Shown: positions 20,879-33,365, counted from the stretch's first letter. The stretch: DNA of 33,365 nucleotides from Guillardia theta CCMP2712 (GCF_000315625.1 NW_005434484.1:1-33365), one strand, 5' to 3'. Notes: generated from the sequence alone by a model not told the origin. A program made the numbers and translations.

Positions 20879-23178
20879 ATGGCGGCGGAAGGCCTTGATG
20901 GAGCCATAGCGGTGCTGGGAGGAGGAGGAGGGAGGGAGGAGGGGGAAGGAAAAAGAAAAGAAGGAGGGCCTGCTGAGGAACTGAAGGAGATGAAGAGAGA
21001 TGCGACACCTGAGCTCATGCTGGACCCTCCGAGTACCCCGAAGATGAAGTGTGTGGTTTCTGGGCTGGAGAAGTTCCTCAAGGAATGGAAGGAAGGAAAG
21101 AAGATGTCGCTTGACGAGTGGGAGAGTGCTTATGGTAAGGTAGACGGGGGGACAGAAAGCGATGCCCTCGCCTTCATGTGTGAAGAAGCTGAAGCTCTCG
21201 CAATGGACGACATGGACGACGATGCTCTTTCGAAGTATTACGACATCTTCATGATCAACCGCAACCATGCTCGAACGCTTCACAGCTTCGCCGTCTTCCA
21301 CCATCGCAAGGCTCAGGTAGGGGTCGCGCGCATCCTATATGAACACTGCTTGAAGATCAGCCCTCGCCGCTGGAAGACGAGCTTCAACCTAGCCCGGTAA
21401 CTCATCGATGCTTGTGTTGCAGTAGTAACGGGAGATGCAGGCTTGAGCAGGACAACAAGATGCAGGAGGAAGCATGTGCTCGCTATGAGGAAATCATCAA
21501 GGCCGCAGAGTGCGACGACAAGACTCGATGCGACTCTCTCGCATACCTCGCTCTGCTTCACCAGGAGCACCACCAGGACTACTGCAAGGCTTGCGATCTC
21601 TACAAGCAGTCGCTAAGGATCACTCCGAACCACATCTACAGTCTTGACCACTTGTGTGCTCTCCTCCAGTCTTGTGGGATCAGCGATGATTCGAAACAGC
21701 TTCATGAGTACGTGTGTGAACTTGACGGGGAGCACGGGTAGAGTCAGGACAGCCCTTTGCCTGCCCATGACGTGCTGGATCAGGTTGCGGTGGTGCCCCT
21801 ACGGTAACAGTCTCTTCAGTGGCGAGAGGCTAGTGAAAAATAAGACGGAAGTGATCAAAAGCCTTCCTGAGGACCTTCGAACTCAGATCGTCGACTTGGT
21901 ACACTAAACCAATTTATTTGATTTTTCAGTGAAATGTTGTACAGCTCAAGGAAATATCAGAGCATGTGCCCAATACACCGACAAAAACGTCGTTACCTCT
22001 CTGTCTTCATTCTTCTTCTGACTCTCTTGTCAATGAACAGCTCGCGGAACGAGAGGCTGTCGTCCATCAAATCCTTCTCCAGCATTATCACCAGCAAGAA
22101 CTTGCGACGCAACACGGATTTGAAGAGCAGCATGCTGCTGCCGGAAGAGTGAGATCTTTGCTTGTGGTGCAGGGTGAAGTCCAGGTGGTGACGAGGATGG
22201 CAGGGGGCTGTTGACGTCCGGGTGGATGAAGAAGCGAGGATGGTACGTGACTTCCTGGAGAGATCGCTTCTTCGTTATCAAAGGCCGAGCGCTGGAGTAC
22301 TACGTGACCGACAAGAACCACCATAACGAGCAGCCAAGAGGAACTATCTGGCTGGCCGGTTGTGAGGTGGAGGACAGGGGCAAGGTTGACAACCTGTTCC
22401 TCTTTGCTGTGCTGGACAAGGTGGCCAAGAGAACGTACGAATGCGCCTGCGAGTCCGACGAGAGCCGTCAAAGTTGGATGTCAAGCATTCGAGAGGTTGC
22501 CTGGGGTGACAGGTGATGAGGAGGGAGAATGACTTCCCGTGCTGATGCTGAGGGATATGCTTGTTGCAGGCGTCATGCCCTCGAGCGTGCGGGGTCCTTC
22601 TTTGAGTCTTTGTATGCCTTTCCTGCCTGCCTGCTCCTCTCTTGACACGTCTGCAGCGTCTCTACAGCGCATGAGCATCCCGATGCACACGGAGGATCGT
22701 TTGCGCTCGGAGGGATCGTGAAGAAGCGAGGATGGTACAACACGTCATGGCAGGACCGCTACTTCCTGCTCAAGGAGAACGTGCTGGAGTACTACGCGAG
22801 CGTTCAGGCCTTCGAGTCAAGGTCGCAACCGCGAGGCAGCATCAATATCTTCGATTGTGTGGTGGAGGAAAAAGGTTCCAACGGGAAGATTTGGGAATTC
22901 ACTATCCGAGACAAGGTGAGTTGAGGGAAGCGAGGGAGGGAGAGGATGGAGAGATGAGGGAAGAAACGAGACATCTAGAGGGAGTATTGCGGGGAAGGGG
23001 GAGGAATCGTAACGAGCCTTTCAAGGGCAGCAAGAGCAGGGAGATCAGAGGGAAGGTCAAGGAAGGTTTGCATGTGACATGAGAGCAGGTCAAGAAGAGA
23101 ACTTATGAATGTGCGTGTGCGACGGAGAAGGAGAGGTCGGAATGGGTGTCTACCATCCGACAGGCGTCAAGAGTTTGA
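20879..23178 (+). CDS. Protein with TPR repeats and two C-terminal PH domains (multi-exon)
   Basis: TPR-like segments ARILYEHCLKISPRRWKTSFNLA and ACDLYKQSLRITPNH. PH domains SGWMKKRGWYVTSWRDRFFVI...SRQSWMSSIR and KKRGWYNTSWQDRYFLL...ERSEWVSTIR. Confidence 0.85.
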
Positions 23179-23416: not shown

Positions 23417-25850
23417 TCATCCATTCTTCTCATCCGCCGATGGCCCCATGTCAGCCAGCATCTCCCGCAGGTCCACCACCAGCGCGGTGATGTTGTCCAT
23501 GCTCCCCAGCTGCCTCCTCGTCAGCTTCTGCCTCACCAACGAGCACCAAGAGAGGGGGAGGAGCCGAGCGACTCACAGAGGGAGTGAGGAAGTGAGTGGG
23601 AGCGAATAGCAGCGGAGGGGAATACAAGTCTGAGAGGATAACGGGCAGCAATGTCATAGGCGAGTACAAGTGTGACAAGGGGGGTGGGAGGGGGGGGAAC
23701 CTTGAGAGCCTCCGCCGTCAATTTCTTTGCAGCTGCTTGCGCATTCTTCTCGCCTGAGATGATCGTTGCAACCTGGACGACAACCATGACACTCATTGCA
23801 CGCCCAGCCGCTTCCCTCAAGCAAGTCTCCAGACCTCTTCCTTGGCTCCCACTACTATCTCCTCTCCTTTCACACTCCCACCACACAATTTGCTTATTGC
23901 ATTCCCCTGCTTGTCTCAACTCCTCTGCTTCCATTGCAGCCACTTTTACCTGCACGTTGGTCATCACGTCCCAGAGGCCATCCGTAGCCATGACAAGAAA
24001 ATCATCGCCCTGCAAGCGCTTGAGCCTTGAGAAGCGGAGGAGGAGAGTGGTGAGGAACAGGGAGGACAAGCGATGGTACCGGCTCAAGCTTCTTGTAGCG
24101 GATCTCGGGCTCCGCAATGACCCAATTCTTCAGCTCCCTAACAGCAGCGCGTGAGAGGAGGAGGATCCAGGAGCTCTTCATGCCTGTCACCAATGCCGCG
24201 AGAAGTAGCAAGGATGCCGTTCACTCTTGCACACCCGAAATAGACCACGGTTCCTCCCGCCTTGCGTTCCATCAGCACAAGTGAGGACGCGCCTGCTCTT
24301 CAGACCTGCTCGATCCTCTCTCGCTCGCTCGGACGGTCTGGTTTGTGATCTACACTCATGGGAATGGCAGACTGACCACAGCAAAGGATAGCCCGACTGG
24401 CACACAAAGTGAGCAAAGATCACCTACAAGCAGCTGACAACTCGCCTGTCCCCCGCGTTGGCAACATAAAGCTCACGTCCCACCAGGAGCGCCGTAGCTG
24501 CTGTGCTGCCATCGCTGTGCTCCCGTCAAGACCGACAGTGAAGGCCAGCACAACAATCACTTGAGGTTCTCCTTCTCCGCCCGCTGCAGGAATGAGGCGT
24601 CTGTCTTCATGAACGCTGATTGGAGTGCCTGCGGGAAATCTTATTCGAGCTTCTTAATACCCTCGCTCACCTCTCGCGGCCCGAGTTGCTGTAGGTCGAC
24701 CTCCAGGTACTTGGCTGGCAACGCATCAGCACAGGAAAGAAACGTCTCATGGTTCTTCTCACCCAGTTGGTCCCTCGCAAACTGCGAAGCTCTCTTGCCG
24801 CTGTGTCCGTCAAATACTCCGAAGAAGCAGGACTTGCCGGAAGCTGCGGGGCAGGATAGATCAGACGGCCACATAGCCCAGCCGTGACTCACTTCCAAAG
24901 TTCAACGAGGTGAAGTGCATGTCCTCCATGTACGGTCGGCGACCCTGCACGAGGCTTGATCGCATCGTCAGGCTTTGGTAGCAGCAGGAGGAGCAGGAGG
25001 AGCAGGAGGAGCAGGAAGAGGATCAAGACCTGTAGCCCACGCTTGGCTTTGACTTCGATCCAGGCTCAAACCCGTCTTCGTCCTTGAACCTCTCAACCCC
25101 AATGCCGGTGAGACGTTGAAGCAAAAACATCCCGACGAGAAAAAGGGAGATGACACTCGAAAGCTGAACACAGCCTGTAACAGGAATGAGGAGAAGACAA
25201 CCTGATCAGTTTCCACATAGAAATCGTGACACAAAATCGACATTGCAACAGCAACATTGCAAACAGACAGACGTGTTCACTTACCCAAAAGAGAGCAAAC
25301 AAACGCGAAAAACACTCCCTTCTCCAACAAGCTCATAGCAGCATCCTCATCCCCCTCCTGCTTTTCTAGCTGGACTCGCCCTCCCAGGAAATCTTCGCCC
25401 ACCAACGTCCAGGTTGCAAACCCAATGAAGATCCTGAAATGTCGAGACACGCATCAGTCCCATCGCGTTCCACAGCACCTTTTTCAAAAGAGTTGGCCAC
25501 GGGTTCCACAAGATTACAATAGAATGTTTCTTGATATCAGCTCACATAATTTGTTCCATCAAACACCCAACTGCATGCTCTCGTCCTCTCAAACTTTCTT
25601 AACCCAACCCATCGACCACACCTACATTCTCCCTGACTATCATGATTCAAAGGCTTGTCTAACAAGCTCAGATAGCTCCTTTTCCTCACATAATGATAGG
25701 TGCATTTCAACAACTACTCCTCAGCTTATTCTCTTCTCTTTCCCAGGCGTCAATCTTCTATGTTTCATTACGATCGGCTTCGGAAAATTGCTCACGAGAG
25801 GGCTCCACCCTCCTTCTCTTCTTGCTCCTCTGCTCTTGCTGCTCATGACT
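23417..25850 (-). CDS. PP2C/PPM-family protein phosphatase (multi-exon; start uncertain)
   Basis: QGRRPYMED, FFGVFDGHSG, DGSTAATALL...YVANAGD, VMATDGLWDV and GSMDNIT. Confidence 0.9.
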
Positions 25851-26960: not shown

Positions 26961-28855
26961 TGTGAGGAAAACCTTCGTGCGTGGAGGCTCTCTGATTTGG
27001 ACCATCCCCTGGATATTCATTGTTGTGTTGAAAGCGTCTTGAACCGTTTGAAAAGTTGAGGATTTTTAAGTAGGACTGAGTTCAGATCCAAAAAGCAAAA
27101 TGTTACAAGCTTGAATTGGTTGTCACTCTATCCAACACTCGGCATGTACTACAAGTTTGCTCAGTCCGATGCTGACAGATGCGGCGGCATACTAATCCGA
27201 TTGGCCGCGCCGCCGCCATTATGCGTTCAACGACTCGCTGCAGCTACCAGCCACGGCTTCTCGGCTAGTCCTACTCGACCGTACGGCCACACTCCGAGCA
27301 CACAGACGGTACGGTAGCCTGCCACTGAGTCACGAGTAGCACAGTGAAAGCGGCCGCTGAGTGGCTGATCATATGATCCGACCGCCGGGATCATAGTGCT
27401 TTCCTGGCAGTTTGACTGATCATCATAGTATAACTTCGAGTAAAGCCACTCATGCCCCGCCGGGCCGCGCCATCCGATCCGAGCCACGGCACCGAACCGA
27501 TCGTACTGGAGTCACGCCGACAGTCGGACGCTCCAAGCTCGGACCGGGGCCCGGGACGGCGGCCCGGGCCCGGGGCTCCGCCGCGGCGGCCGGGCTGCGC
27601 CGGTGAAAAGTACTAAGTTTTACAACCCGTGTTGCGGCCCTGAAAACGTTACATGGCCGTTAGATGATCATGACATAAAATGGATTTATTAGTTTTAAAA
27701 CTATAAAAGCTCAAATAAACCCGCTCACTACGCAGGGGTTGATGAGATACTACAGGGGATAGGGAGGTAGGGGTTGTCCTGTTTCTAGCACTGCTACGAC
27801 AGCTACGGTAGGGGTGGTCAAAGTTGTGGTCCTGCAGTATGGATATATGGGGGTAGGACTACGCCCTCGACCATGGGAAGTAGAAGATGTGGGGAGAAAC
27901 GGTGGGTTCGATAAGGATATAATGAGGTGGAATATGGGGTAGGGGTAGTAAGGAGTAGGGGTATATCCTAGGAAATGACCCTAAAATATTAGTAATGGTT
28001 TGTACCCACATGAAAAACAGTTTTAAAAAGAAACATTCTTTTTTAACTAGACCGTTCGGGAATGGTGGTCGAGGCTCGAGGTGGAGAGGGGAGGGGAGGG
28101 ACAAGAAGTTGGGCGAGCTAGACATCTGACAAAGAAGGAGATCGATGGACTTCAAGACAGAGAGACAGATGGACACACAGGCTAAATAATGCGGAAGATG
28201 CAGGATAGTGTGGAGTTAGGAGCAGCTGAACAGTTTAAAAAAAATGGGCTGAGAGTAGGATCGAATGATAAGGGGAGATTCTGAGAGTCAAACAGAAGAA
28301 CCTGATCAATCTGTCCAGGGCAGAAATTCAGATGTAGGAATGAGGGATTCGAATTGCTGCAGACCTCAAAGGTCAAATTAAGATAGAATGAGCGCAGTTT
28401 TATTCGAAATTAAAGTGTTGTCGAATGAGGACCTTTTGTAAAGTAGAAAAAAGTGCTTTGCTCATGTTTACTTCTATCATCATCTTTGGCTATAGATGGT
28501 TGTATGCAAGCAGATATCCTCCTCTTTTTGTTCAAAATGCTTCTGTTGTATTGGGTCTGTGGCTTGAGAACTTCTCTACGCATTCTACTGCCATGAATGA
28601 TAGCACTCCGATGGCTCCTCTATCCTCCTCAGTCATACCTCTTGCTGTTCTCCCTTCCTTTTCTTCTGGAGCTCATTCGAAGCAACTGCTCTCGCTTACG
28701 ATGTGCCGAAGCATGGCGTGAAGCTTCAAGCCACAGCCGGGACCGGATTGACGATTGTGGAATTCATGGGCAGGCATGGCAAGTTAGGTATTAGCAAACA
28801 TTGCCGATCGGTTCGACTGAAGTTTTAACAGGATGTGTTAGCTTCTGAAGAACAA

Positions 28856-31800
28856 ATGGAGATGACGGAATTGCAACCGACAGCGAGCAACCCGCTGGAA
28901 GACGTAAAGAGCTCCCGGTTGGCACAGCATCGCATTGACGTTGCTCACAGATCAAGTTCTTTTGGGAAATCTTTCAGCAAGATGCGAATGCAAATATCGT
29001 TCTTTTCTTCCAGAAGCTGTTTGCCACGGAACCTGGATCAGTGCGTCTTTTCCGGAATACCGGTAATGATTTGCTGCACGTGCGTGGAGCAATCTGATTG
29101 TATTGATTCAGCAAACTCGACTCCTCCGTTGTCGAAGCGAGCAAACATCGTTGAGAAGCATCTCGATCACTGCATTCAAAGAGCAACGAGGTGACGCAAC
29201 CATTCTTCTCTGCACTCACTGAGTGGATCACCAACCAGCATCGAAGATCTCGTCCCTGGATGTCAATCGCTGTGTGCCTGTCTGTGCCAGCAGGGCTTTG
29301 AGTGGAAAGCTTTCTTGGACGTTAGACCTCTCTCCCTCCTTCCCTCCCTCCATCTCTCCTTCCCTCCCTCACTCCATCCATCAATCCATCCATCTAAATT
29401 ACTGATTTGCTTCCAGATCCTTGGAAAGACACTCTCGTCCCTGTTCGAGACCCTCTGCCGCAATGAATGGACGCCAACCATCAAGTTGAAGTGGCACAAC
29501 TTGTGGAGGGTGCTGCAGCATCGGATGCTCTTCTCTGGGGAGAACGTCTCCATGGAGGTTGGGGAAAGCTACAACATACCCAAGTATCTCTACCAAGGTT
29601 CCGCTATCCTCACTCGCCTCGGACGAGATGCTCAGAATCATTCAGATGGTTTACGCCCTGGGCCTCTCACTTGTTTGACACGTGTTCCTTGCCAGGTATC
29701 GTCGACACCAATTCTCGTGTGCGCCTCAGCATCTTCTCGGGCCAGCACGGAGTTGTTGTCTTGCGTGCTGTGGACGCATTGGACGTTACTGTCTTCGAGC
29801 AGGACATAGGGCCGACGTCGCCCGACGTCAATGTTGAAGAAAACTTCTCCGTGCTGTTGAGGGATCCTGATAACGGTGTGTGGGGCATCCAGTTTGAGTC
29901 TGCCAAGGCCTTGTCGGGGTTTCTGTCGGGCATCTCGATAGCTCAAGACATCGTCTTCTCCAACAAGTCTGAGCGACAAACCAAGTCTAATGGCTGCCTG
30001 CAAGGCTCGTCGAGTGCGATAAACTTCTGGTTAAGAACGCTTCACTTCTCTCCATCACCCTGAAACTTGACCTAGGGCGAGAGCCATAGCCGAGATTGGT
30101 GATTGCCACCCAAGGCAGGGCCTGGGCCAGGGGAAGGTACATGTGCTCCAGCGTATGTACGACCAGTGCTGATGGCTACATGACAGACCCACGTGTTGGA
30201 GGATCACGAAGCTTGCCTGTCGCCGAGAGCAGAGAGCAGCATGCTGTTGCGGGTGCTCGAAGACATGTTCACAGCAAAGAGATCAGAGTCCGAGGAGATG
30301 GCCCTCCTGCGATCGCAGATCGATCGACTGGAGAAGAGCCTGTCGTCGCTGTCGGTCGTGCGGCAAGATGTGAGTGTGTGAGCTGCCTGTGCTGTCAGTG
30401 ACGTTGCCGACAGTCCCGATCCTCGGAGAGTAACGCTCCTACCCCTCCCAAGCATCAGGTGGTCCGCCATCTTTCGCTAGAGGACATCGACGTTGAGAAG
30501 TTGAACAAGCCGCTCGGCCTCGAGCGGATGTCATCGGCTGACAACATAGGGTCCCTCGTCTCCTTTAACCTCGACTCGTCCCAGGAGAACTCACCGATGC
30601 TGTCCCCCATGAAGTCGGCCATGTCGGATGTCGATCTCAACCGCCCCTTCCCTTACACCAACGCTGTCTACATCCAGCAGCAGGACATCTACGAGGACGG
30701 CATCCCTCCCATCCCCCGAGCGATCGCAGCTCAGCGGCACATGGAGGTGATGGTTCTCGTGCGAGAGGCGACCAACCTGCCGGTGTCCAAGGCAGAGACG
30801 GAGAAGTCCTACTACTGCGTGGAGATCACCTGCGACCAGGAGACCTTCAAGACCGACGTCCGAATCGCCAACTCCTCCCATGGCTGCCAGTGGTTCGAAC
30901 GCTCGAGCATCAATGTGCCTGCACACCTCCTGCAGGAGGCTCGGCGAGCTATGAGCGAGAGCTCAGCTGCTCCTTCCTTGCTCCTCACCCTCTACGACTG
31001 CGGGAGATACTCGGGACGAGAGGTCGTAGGGTCCAGCACGTTCACGCTCGACAAGATCTTCGACATTCCCGATGACGGCATCCTCTGCAACTTCGAGCTG
31101 GACAAGGAGGGCAGCCCTGGTGAGAGAGGATGATAAACCCTTGCTATTCCTGCCTCGCTGATGGTTGTGCAGTTTTCGGGGAGAACGGGAAGGAGTCCAT
31201 GGTCTCTGTGGCCTTTAGGACTCACTTGTCCAAATATCTCAACGAGGTAGGAAACTTCTCTCTGATGATGTTGTTGATGATGATGAGGAGGAGGAGGTGG
31301 AGGAGGAGGAGGATTGTAGCGGTAGTGGTGATGGTGGTCATGACGATGATAGTTGTGGTAGTGGTGGTCTTGATAAGTGTAATGGTGATAGTGGCCTGTT
31401 ATCCTTCCCCTCCTGCTCTCCGTCCTTCCCTTCCTTTCCTTCCTTTCCTTCCTCCCCGCCTGCCCACCCTTTTCGACATTTTGACGCTCTTGCCAGTGGC
31501 AACCGCCGAGCCTGGAAGACACGCTGAGGTCGAGCGAGAGCAAGGTGGTGCTCGCTCCGGCTCGAGTCTCGTGGTACTCGCGGATAGAGCGAGAGGTCAG
31601 CCCGTCGTCTCCCTCCAACAAGACGGCGATCCGAGGTTACATGTCTCAGTTCGGCCGCACCATGTCGCTCACCGGCATGCACGACAACCGGAGCAGACAG
31701 GAGGACAGCATGGAGGAGAGGCCCCTGCTGACGCTGGAGTGGGATCAGGTGTCGGATATGGAGGAGGACGAGTGGGAGAAGATCGACTACTACTGGCGCG

Positions 31801-33365
31801 AGAGGCTGGAGAAGATCATGGACTCGTTGTTGGTCAACATCCTCATCATATGCCTGGTCTGCGTTGACATCTGCAACATCATCGTCTACACCTTTGTAAT
31901 CATCCCTCCCCCCGGCTCCCCCGAGCCAGTCACCCAGGTGATCCTATCGAGCGTCGTCGTCTTCAGCCTCCTCATTGAGCTCACGCTGCGGCAAATCGCC
32001 ATGGGGGTGAGGTTTTGGAAGGTCAAGATCAACATCTTTGACTTCAGTGTCGTCTGGCTGTCCGCCATCGTCATCATTATGCGCAAGGTGGCGGATGTGG
32101 TGGACGGGAATCACTTCCAGGGGGTCCAGGCAGTTGTCTTCCTCCGCATCTTCTCCAGAATCGCCGTGATCCTCCGAGTCGCGCGCGTGCTGATCAACCT
32201 GCGACGGGCAAGGCAGCTGAGCGGGCACGTGGCGAAGAAGCTGAGAAGCACGGTATCGCAGAACAAGAGGAGGTACAAGAAGCACGGGTTCGACCTGGAC
32301 CTCACCTACATTACCTCCCGCGTCATCGCCATGGGAACCCCCGCGTTCGGCAAGCACAGCTCCTACCGCAACGACATCCACGTTGTCTCCCGCTTCATGT
32401 CCCTGCGGCACTACGGCTGCTTCTTCATCTTCAACCTCTGCGACACCTTCGTGTCCTCGGACGGGGTGACGGGCAACTACAACCCCAACATGCTCTTCAA
32501 CCAGGTCCAGCGAATCCCGTTCGAGGACCACGGGCCCCCGCTCATGTCGGAGATGCTCCAGTTCTGCGAGGAGGCTCAGGTGTGGCTGCAGAAGGACCCG
32601 AGGAACGTGATCGCAATCCACTGTAAGGGAGGGAAGGGCCGCTCGGGCGTCATGTCTTCCGCCATCATCCTATGGAGCGGTCACAGGAAGTGCGCCGTCG
32701 ATGCGCTGGAGCTGTTCACCTTCAGGCGAACTGAAAATTACAACCCTGAGGTATCCAAACCCTTGACCTCCACCTCCCCATCGCTTCCTCCACCTCCACC
32801 TTACATCCCAGTGGGCCCCCCCCCCCACTCCCTCCCAAAACCCTATACCTCCACTCCTCCCACCTCAATTCCCGTCTCCATCTCGATTTCCCTTCCTCTA
32901 CCGCAATCCCTCCCTTCCTCTACCTTCATCTCCATCTCTCCTCCTAGCCTCAACTCCCGTACTCCCCTCCCCTCCATCTCCTCCCCCTTTCTACCTTCAC
33001 CTCCCCTTCTGCTCCCTTACTTCACAGAAAATGCCTCCTGTCCCTCCTGCTCTCCTTCTCCTGCTTCCCATTGCTCCCACCTGCTGACCCTCACCGGCAG
33101 CTCGGCTTGGACGGCACGTACAACAACTTCTACACTCGACGTCCGTGCAATCAGACGGTTGAGGGGCCCAGTCAGATCCGCTACGTCCACTACCTCGAAG
33201 CCGTGCTGTACAGCGGCATCGACCCCCTCGAGTACTACAAGATGCTCCTGATGGATCTTGAGATCTCTGTCTCCATGCACCAGCAGAAAACGCTGTACGC
33301 TCCTCCAAAATCTTTTGCTTATTGCTCTCCTCGCCGTTCTCCCTCGCTCCCTCCCTCTCCCCTCC
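28856..33365 (+). CDS. Voltage-sensing phosphatase (VSP/TPTE-like) with extra N-terminal globin-like, EVH1/PH-like and C2 domains; 3'-partial and may start further upstream
   Basis: S1-S4 helices, linker TVSQNKRRYKKHGFDLDLTYIT, PFEDH, catalytic HCKGGKGRSG and VEGPSQIRYV. Upstream exons join in frame via GT-AG introns 28904-28950, 29063-29111, 29191-29238, 29321-29416, 29598-29695, 30030-30075, 30137-30186, 30370-30458, 31120-31172 and 31247-31496. Confidence 0.85.

Follow-up and report, generated by a model that had tools for sequence, protein, structure and literature searches.

The stretch of DNA analysed here, hereafter the window, comprises the first 33,365 nucleotides (nt) of scaffold C190 (C190:1-33365) of the cryptophyte alga Guillardia theta CCMP2712, whose genome assembly amounts to 87 Mb in 669 contigs. 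At its right-hand end lies the gene under study, which encodes a voltage-sensing phosphatase (VSP) preceded by several accessory domains and which extends past the window edge. Twelve coding exons between 28856 and 33294 are joined in phase with no stop and give 3,359 nt, or 1,119 codons, in the window. The in-frame TAG at 28785-28787, in the exon of the 5' untranslated region (5'UTR), shuts the frame upstream, so that the ATG at 28856 is the start. Eleven complete coding introns lie between this ATG and 33294, all of them GT-AG, and a twelfth opens at 33295. As for intron lengths, nine are of 44-53 nt and the rest of 96, 250 and 350 nt. The sequence-only reading of this DNA had counted ten canonical introns joining, in frame, a globin fold, an EVH1/WH1-like segment, a short coiled coil, a C2 domain, an S1-S4 voltage sensor and a VSP-type phosphatase; the count is hence one too low, while the in-frame joining is borne out and all the strings that it quoted (LLRDPDNGVWGIQFESAKALSGF, VLVREATNLP, LLLTLYD, VVGSSTF and HCKGGKGR) fall within predicted exons.

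Splicing was examined on transcript contigs of runs X1, X2 and X6, which come from three studies. The run records are not labelled RNA, but the introns are removed in these contigs, which therefore derive from complementary DNA; about two thirds of the sampled words are present in them, roughly the exonic share. GT..AG joints are seen in them for ten coding junctions and for the 5'UTR intron, and the junction 29320/29417, which falls within a skipped repeat, was deduced from neighbouring pieces of one contig. Transcripts use the donor at 29648/29649, located 51 nt past an alternative in-frame GT donor (29597/29598), and the acceptor at 30413/30414, located 45 nt ahead of an alternative at 30459. 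The third record of X2 is a single 4,957-nt contig which runs from the 5'UTR to the phosphatase in exon 12 and 1,485 nt beyond. In run X1 the locus is covered by two contigs overlapping by 30 nt (30871-30900) inside exon 9, which is an assembly break and not a gene boundary. Only two reads came from the raw-read RNA run X19, of which 6% was sampled, a yield that is neutral as to the gene model. A spliced exon chain seen in three studies is not explicable by chance.

Two homologues share the N-terminal half of the gene. The first, P0155, is a single uninterrupted open reading frame (ORF) of 1,966 residues on a Joint Genome Institute (JGI) metagenome contig, with the same order of parts. The second, hereafter the Teleaulax-like gene, is P0156 on contig L019; the 90% cluster of P0156 includes Tamp_00480 of Teleaulax amphioxeia. 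Given the transcript contigs, the frame open across the joints, the uninterrupted P0155 frame and the colinear exons of the Teleaulax-like gene, one expressed G. theta gene carries all the parts, as the single transcript initially proposed would require. The features are listed in Table 1.

Table 1. Features of the G. theta VSP gene in the window, and its paralogues elsewhere in the genome
Feature	Position	Strand	Content
5'UTR exon	28400-28787	+	at least 32 nt more left of 28400 in run X1; transcript joint
5'UTR intron	28788-28831	+	44 nt, GT-AG, in transcripts
Exon 1	28832-28903	+	coding from ATG 28856, 16 codons
Exon 2	28951-29062	+	globin-like helices A-C (W...KLFATEP...LF)
Exon 3	29112-29190	+	globin-like E-helix region
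Exon 4	29239-29320	+	globin-like F helix and FG corner
Exon 5	29417-29648	+	globin-like helices G-H (29417-29530), then linker and start of beta-rich module
Exon 6	29696-30029	+	conserved beta-rich module, possibly PH/EVH1-like
Exon 7	30076-30136	+	20-codon linker exon
Exon 8	30187-30369	+	helical, coiled-coil-like stretch
Exon 9	30414-31119	+	low-complexity linker, then C2 domain from ~30747, poor in Ca ligands
Exon 10	31173-31246	+	final C2 strands; P0153 alignment reaches 31238
Exon 11	31497-32750	+	S1-S4 ~31794-32231; S4 32133-32216; NKRRY 32262-32276; HCKGGKGR 32619-32642
Exon 12	33101-33294	+	end of phosphatase domain
Paralogue loci	two on C21, one on C14, one on C150		C2 and sensor-phosphatase matches

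Voltage sensor, phosphatase and 3' continuation

Searches were run exon by exon with the separate exon sequences as queries. Exon 11 matches Pfam Ion_trans at 37.7 bits (cut-off 25) and aligns over both sensor and enzyme with the full-length TPTE2 structure 9c49 (E 3.2e-45). It also matches the catalytic region of Ci-VSP (3awf, E 9e-42), the Ci-VSP sensor (4g7v, E 1.7e-5) and PTEN (1d5r, E 1e-33). The S4 helix contains seven Arg, at residues 217, 221, 227, 230, 236, 237 and 239 of exon 11, and in the family alignment the counter-charges are kept as an Asp in S1 (VDI) and another in S3 (NIFD), with a Glu/Arg pair in S2 (IELTLR). In Ci-VSP, the counter-charges include D164 and D186 (PMC3440755).

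Right after the sensor comes NKRRY, within a VSP-type linker which reads SQNKRRYKKHGFDLDLTYIT at 32256-32315 where Ci-VSP has SQNKRRYRKDGFDLDLTYVT. The active site HCKGGKGR is identical to that of Ci-VSP in the alignment to the PDB structure, and the phosphatase carries an insert of eight residues relative to animal VSPs. Given the sensor, the NKRRY linker, the HCKGGKGR site and a PTEN-type C2 domain behind the enzyme, the assignment of the sensor-phosphatase as a VSP is solid at the level of sequence features, and both parts stand as originally called. PTEN, with which the protein shares the phosphatase fold and the following C2 domain, is soluble, has Ala in its HCKAGKGR site and acts as a 3-phosphatase only. 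Going by Ci-VSP, the Gly found here goes with a predicted 5-phosphatase activity on phosphatidylinositol 4,5-bisphosphate, PI(4,5)P2, and phosphatidylinositol 3,4,5-trisphosphate, PI(3,4,5)P3.

The window edge coincides with the start of a run of 2,505 N (C190:33366-35870) inside the intron between exons 12 and 13, which extends to C190:36076 and ends in a CAG acceptor. All three transcript contigs have a loose end at 33298 that is identical to L010:211-240, which shows that exon 12 is spliced to the exon starting at C190:36077. This exon 13, outside the window, encodes the PTEN-type C2 domain (PF10409, 35.7 bits for a cut-off of 27.1) and the first half of a putative cyclic nucleotide monophosphate (cNMP)-binding domain, and a later exon encodes the second half of another such putative domain; the homologues P0215, P0179 and P0186 match the cNMP-binding family (PF00027) at 39-52 bits. 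From the exon lengths, the whole protein is estimated at roughly 1,800 residues. An intron downstream of the first cNMP-like exon contains, at L010:1345-1551 (C190:37215-37421), two long runs of trinucleotide repeats, which would be translated as poly-Ile, poly-Ser or poly-His according to the frame.

Domains ahead of the sensor

The C2 domain in front of the sensor falls just below the Pfam cut-off when exon 9 is searched alone (PF00168, 21.6 and also 21.3 bits, cut-off 22), and a profile of exon 9, as its first row, with eleven relatives matches synaptotagmin-1 at E 1.5e-8. According to alignment A7, the acidic Ca ligands (PKxD...CDP and DxD...D) are absent in this gene and in its five nearest relatives, and are retained in other cryptophyte VSPs and in the C21 paralogue. 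The domain thus appears real at the family level, as had been proposed, but it has lost its Ca-binding aspartates. In all four G. theta paralogues the sensor-phosphatase match is preceded, on its own strand, by a C2 match. In one of them, on C21, C2 domain, sensor and enzyme are contained in a single ATG-started ORF of 722 residues (L002:105-2273), which proves the fusion with no recourse to splicing. Judging from these loci, a C2 domain before the sensor is a family trait. This ORF belongs to a pair of VSP paralogues, both with a Ca-type C2, sensor and phosphatase, which stand head to head ~ 1.8 kb apart as an inverted duplicate (C21:458310-460159 on the minus strand and 461949-463792 on the plus strand).

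Exon 8 encodes the short coiled coil expected from the sequence-only reading, in the form of a helical, coiled-coil-like stretch with a weak Pfam match to RH1 (E 0.036); a short helix resembling it is visible by eye in P0155 and P0156. Upstream of it lies a beta-rich module, encoded by the end of exon 5 together with exon 6 and conserved in P0155 and in the Teleaulax-like gene. Exon 6 matches the corresponding Teleaulax-like exon at E 8.7e-4, and the rest of the similarity was seen by eye.

The beta-rich module had been called EVH1/WH1-like. A language-model feature search of a protein atlas does place exon 6 near EVH1_PP4R3, WH1, RanBP1 and VID27 PH-like clusters (top score 0.90), and the ten best family-bearing matches share the family or clan of the top match (EVH1/WH1). 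Pfam (PF00568 and PF22972 included) and PDB searches with the module gave nothing, and neither did the search of its family profile A6 against PDB or the metagenome scan with exon 6. In addition, the WH1 and EVH1_PP4R3 models, searched against the genome, did not match the locus, although the same model search found the EVH1 domain of the G. theta PP4R3 at 63 bits as a control, and the hhalign comparison of A6 with that domain (P 0.16) gave no support. The EVH1/PH-like identity is hence a lead from the language model and goes no further, the call having found no backing in Pfam, PDB or profile comparisons.

The globin-like region, encoded by exons 2 to 5, gave no Pfam or PDB match with any of its exons as query, and none of 225 relatives matched the N-terminal exons in tblastn at E up to 1. 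Its homology to P0155 and the Teleaulax-like gene was first spotted by reading the sequences and then confirmed pairwise. Indeed, exon 2 matches residues 62-93 of P0155 (BLASTP E 7e-6) and exon 5 residues 171-206 (E 4e-5), in colinear order. On L019, upstream of the annotated start of P0156, there are exons matching exon 2 (E 9e-8), exon 4 and exon 5, and these upstream exons match P0155 at E 2.5e-19. A three-species alignment (A5) was made in which P0155:50-215 was combined with the exons of the Teleaulax-like gene and of the window, entered as separate rows, and its profile was searched with hmmsearch against 177,635 PDB sequences. Neuroglobin came out best (E 3.6e-6), the globin fused to a Roadblock domain in 3wfw was found at E 6.7e-6, and 25 globins fell below E 0.05, the best 25 matches being all globins, with colinear helices from A to H. 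Weaker, independent agreement came from hhalign comparisons of the G. theta globins with the family, in which P was 0.0023 for P0155, 0.058 for exon 2 (B/C helices) and 0.02 for exon 5 (G/H). Taken together, these profile matches make it likely that a globin-type domain is present at the N-terminus.

Three further approaches to this region contributed nothing to the profiles. A word-index search with the P0155 N-terminus returned P0155 itself only, a search with a G. theta globin for a broad globin profile returned only eight close relatives, and the MAFFT alignments A2-A4, in which the exon fragments were scattered, were not used. A metagenome scan with P0155:50-350 gave one match, L018, which was rejected as a bacterial contig matched by chance. 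Elsewhere in the genome, a six-frame search with the Pfam Globin model found 16 other domains, this locus not being among them. They are located on C78, C178, C192, C189 and C29, paired inside open frames of 700-900 residues; these multi-globin proteins keep the proximal His, and GenBank has only partial fragments of them, of 107-126 residues.

Relatives and neighbouring genes

An exhaustive search with exon 11 returned 4,926 relatives, of which the closest are long proteins of 700-2,000 residues, and the named near relatives are cryptophytes: Hanusia phi, Teleaulax amphioxeia and cryptophyte transcriptomes of MMETSP. The precomputed Pfam lists of the relatives show C2, Ion_trans, phosphatase, PTEN_C2 and cNMP_binding together. 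Exon 11 is 47-61% identical to the cryptophyte relatives of this C2-VSP-cNMP type, G. theta paralogues included. All of them share the core of sensor, phosphatase and PTEN-C2. These paralogues and most of the relatives listed have a C2 domain ahead of the sensor, and several show cNMP-binding matches. The Hanusia phi protein (UniRef P0164, named 'phosphatidylinositol-3,4,5-trisphosphate 3-phosphatase') has the complete C2-sensor-phosphatase-C2-cNMP layout; the called product of Teleaulax amphioxeia (EukProt Tamp_00480, in the P0156 cluster) has no cNMP match and matches C2 only weakly. Most cryptophyte relatives have a Ca-type C2 (DxD kept) and neither the globin-like nor the beta-rich module, which among the relatives are shared only by P0155 and the Teleaulax-like gene.

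The public models of these genes are short. The sole GenBank model at the present locus is a partial phosphatase of 165 residues, on an 87,487-bp scaffold, and no contigs encoding this fragment are on record. The public models of P0155 and P0156 probably lack part of the 3' end, and that of P0156 part of the 5' end as well. More same-strand ORFs follow the annotated products of P0156 (L019:10653-12501) and P0155 (L017:8270-8776), one of them with a weak cNMP_binding match.

In the searchable literature, most subscription journals being outside it, neither algal VSPs nor any VSP with these additional domains turned up; there, VSPs are described for animals, together with a predicted sequence of the choanoflagellate Monosiga, and as composed of sensor, enzyme and C2 domain. 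The initial claim that no such architecture had been described agrees with this as far as papers are concerned, but the core layout is present in databases (Hanusia phi) and the globin-bearing form in at least two other organisms. By its sequence, the protein thus has a core layout that is known from databases and uncharacterised, and what is new is the accessory domains of a multi-domain cryptophyte VSP.

Upstream in the window there are an ORF resembling RCC1, near 18.8 kb, one with a PH domain, at 22211-22516 on the plus strand, which matches the PH domains of the PTEN-family proteins P0208 and P0099 (E 6e-10), and one for a PP2C-like phosphatase, at 23533-24117 on the minus strand. All three are separate from the VSP gene, and there is no long ORF between 26.8 and 28.4 kb.

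Proposed function, competing explanations and significance

The G. theta protein resembles Ci-VSP and TPTE2 in its S1-S4 helices, in the NKRRY linker, near-identical over some 20 residues, in the Gly of HCKGGKGR and in the PTEN-type C2 after the enzyme. It differs from them by ~ 640 extra N-terminal residues (globin-like, beta-rich, helix and C2), by the cNMP-binding-like domains behind, by a Leu for Phe in S2 and by the eight-residue phosphatase insert, and it is an algal protein known here from its sequence. The sperm Na+/H+ exchanger SLC9C1 and HCN channels likewise combine a voltage sensor and a cyclic-nucleotide-binding domain (reviewed in PMC13095418). In those proteins, however, the effector is a transporter or a pore and not a lipid phosphatase, and there is no homology outside the two domains. 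As to the N-terminus, neuroglobin and signalling-fused globins (PDB 5eu2 and 3wfw) share the colinear A-H helices at the profile level, but they bind heme via His F8, whereas the G. theta protein has Leu F8 and remains below the Pfam globin threshold.

Considering these features, we think it likely that the gene encodes a large multi-domain cryptophyte VSP acting as a voltage-to-lipid transducer, whose gain or location would be set by the accessory domains. With four membrane helices both ends are cytoplasmic, and the accessory domains would therefore face the same leaflet as the enzyme. By analogy with Ci-VSP, depolarisation would move S4, the linker would then engage the membrane and the enzyme would take phosphate off PI(4,5)P2 and PI(3,4,5)P3. 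The C-terminal nucleotide-binding-like domains, together with the N-terminal C2, helix and globin module, may adjust its activity, oligomer state or location. Exons and transcripts show which parts there are and how they follow one another; the tuning role is what we infer for them.

Several observations weigh against this reading. In the sensor, Leu (LLIELTLR) stands at position -3 from the Glu of the S2 motif [F/Y/W]xx[E/D]xxx[R/K], a position that is aromatic in VSPs and channels. This aromatic is F161 in Ci-VSP (PMC4878010, PMC3440755), where its mutations are reported to have little effect (PMC3440755), and the more distant cryptophyte relatives P0003, P0162 and P0164 retain Phe at this position. 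In the C-terminal part, the two partial matches of the gene to PF00027 reach 23.3 and 24.4 bits for a cut-off of 27.5, and ~ 1 kb from the start of exon 13 the similarity to the homologues P0215, P0152 and P0179 passes from frame 0 to frame 2 (near L010:1213-1239). At the N-terminus, Pfam Globin (PF00042) matched neither any exon nor P0155:50-220, even at E up to 10, and the globin profile is supported by three species. Moreover, AlphaFold2 models made without an alignment were unusable both for P0155:50-350 (mean predicted local distance difference test score, pLDDT, 41.5) and for exon 6 (pLDDT 34).

The blank Pfam result, obtained even for the contiguous homologue P0155, the unusable model and hhalign probabilities of 12.5% at most would fit N-terminal 190 residues that form an unrelated helical bundle, globin-like by composition. 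We regard this as unlikely, since the 25 best PDB matches of the A5 profile, at E values as low as that of neuroglobin, are globins with colinear helices, and the top single-sequence PDB match of P0155 is itself a hemoglobin, although a non-significant one (E 0.38). The globin-type domain first called from the sequence is hence upheld by the family profile and not by Pfam, and it is without the proximal His, as detailed below.

The frame switch in exon 13 bears on the integrity of the gene. An intron cannot fit in the region concerned (L010:1200-1345, equal to C190:37070-37215), where frame 0 meets a stop at 1342-1344 and frame 2 ends at a GTGAGA donor. Either an assembly error of one or two bases or a real frameshift cutting off the C-terminal part accounts for the break. 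In the second case the gene would be decaying and its protein truncated or non-functional, for which we see a small chance, given that all three studies have the twelve window exons undamaged and correctly joined and that the frame-2 stretch stays homologue-like up to its canonical donor. The region also adjoins the 2.5-kb gap of a draft assembly, which makes a base-calling error plausible.

A sensory role of the globin-like domain was considered as well, in which it would bind heme or another cofactor through its Cys-rich F helix and the phosphatase would sense oxygen, nitric oxide or redox in addition to voltage. Known globin-coupled sensors use their globin cofactor to drive signalling. One of the two best PDB matches of the globin-type profile, 3wfw, is such a heme globin fused to a signalling domain, and three Cys flank the F8 position in the G. 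theta protein. These Cys are, however, absent in the other two members, and all three members, G. theta included, have Leu where neuroglobin has its proximal His (His96); the hhalign alignment to the G. theta globins places a Ser at F8, so that neither alignment has a His there. At the E7-equivalent position, our own by-eye alignment on A5 gives Arg for G. theta, His for P0155 and Gln for the Teleaulax-like gene. Moreover, the true G. theta globins retain the His and match Pfam while the N-terminal domain does not. With Leu at F8 and no conserved heme ligand, heme-based sensing is unlikely, and we rate the cofactor-bound sensor as a whole as quite improbable; the ligand, redox or light input that had been envisaged is thus unlikely to act through heme. 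The globin-like domain is probably heme-free and would serve regulation or interaction, not gas sensing.

Finally, an assembly chimera of a neighbouring globin/C2 gene with a VSP gene, which the two overlapping contigs of X1 and the 165-residue GenBank fragment could suggest, is extremely improbable, because the two X1 contigs part within exon 9, the contig of X2 shows no break, the frame is open across the joints, and both P0155 and the paralogue ORF on C21 show the fusions in uninterrupted DNA.

The multi-domain VSP tuned by its accessory domains thus remains the reading that we favour. A bolder and quite improbable extension of it is that the VSP of cryptophytes became a coincidence detector, in which voltage (set in these algae by channelrhodopsins), cyclic nucleotides (at the C-terminal domains) and a heme-less, Cys-rich globin responding to thiol redox or a non-heme ligand would together set phosphoinositides; if true, such a detector could serve, for example, phototaxis or flagellar control.

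G. theta has five VSP loci in one genome, with C2 in front and nucleotide-binding-like domains behind, and one lineage adds a histidine-less globin, which shows the sensor-enzyme pair to be old and modular. These proteins are natural constructs for how cytoplasmic domains tune a voltage sensor. The present gene model also corrects the public annotation, in which a protein of roughly 1,800 residues is reduced to a fragment of 165 residues. Furthermore, G. theta is the source of widely used channelrhodopsins, and a native voltage-reading enzyme would be of interest both for the photobehaviour of this alga and as a tool.

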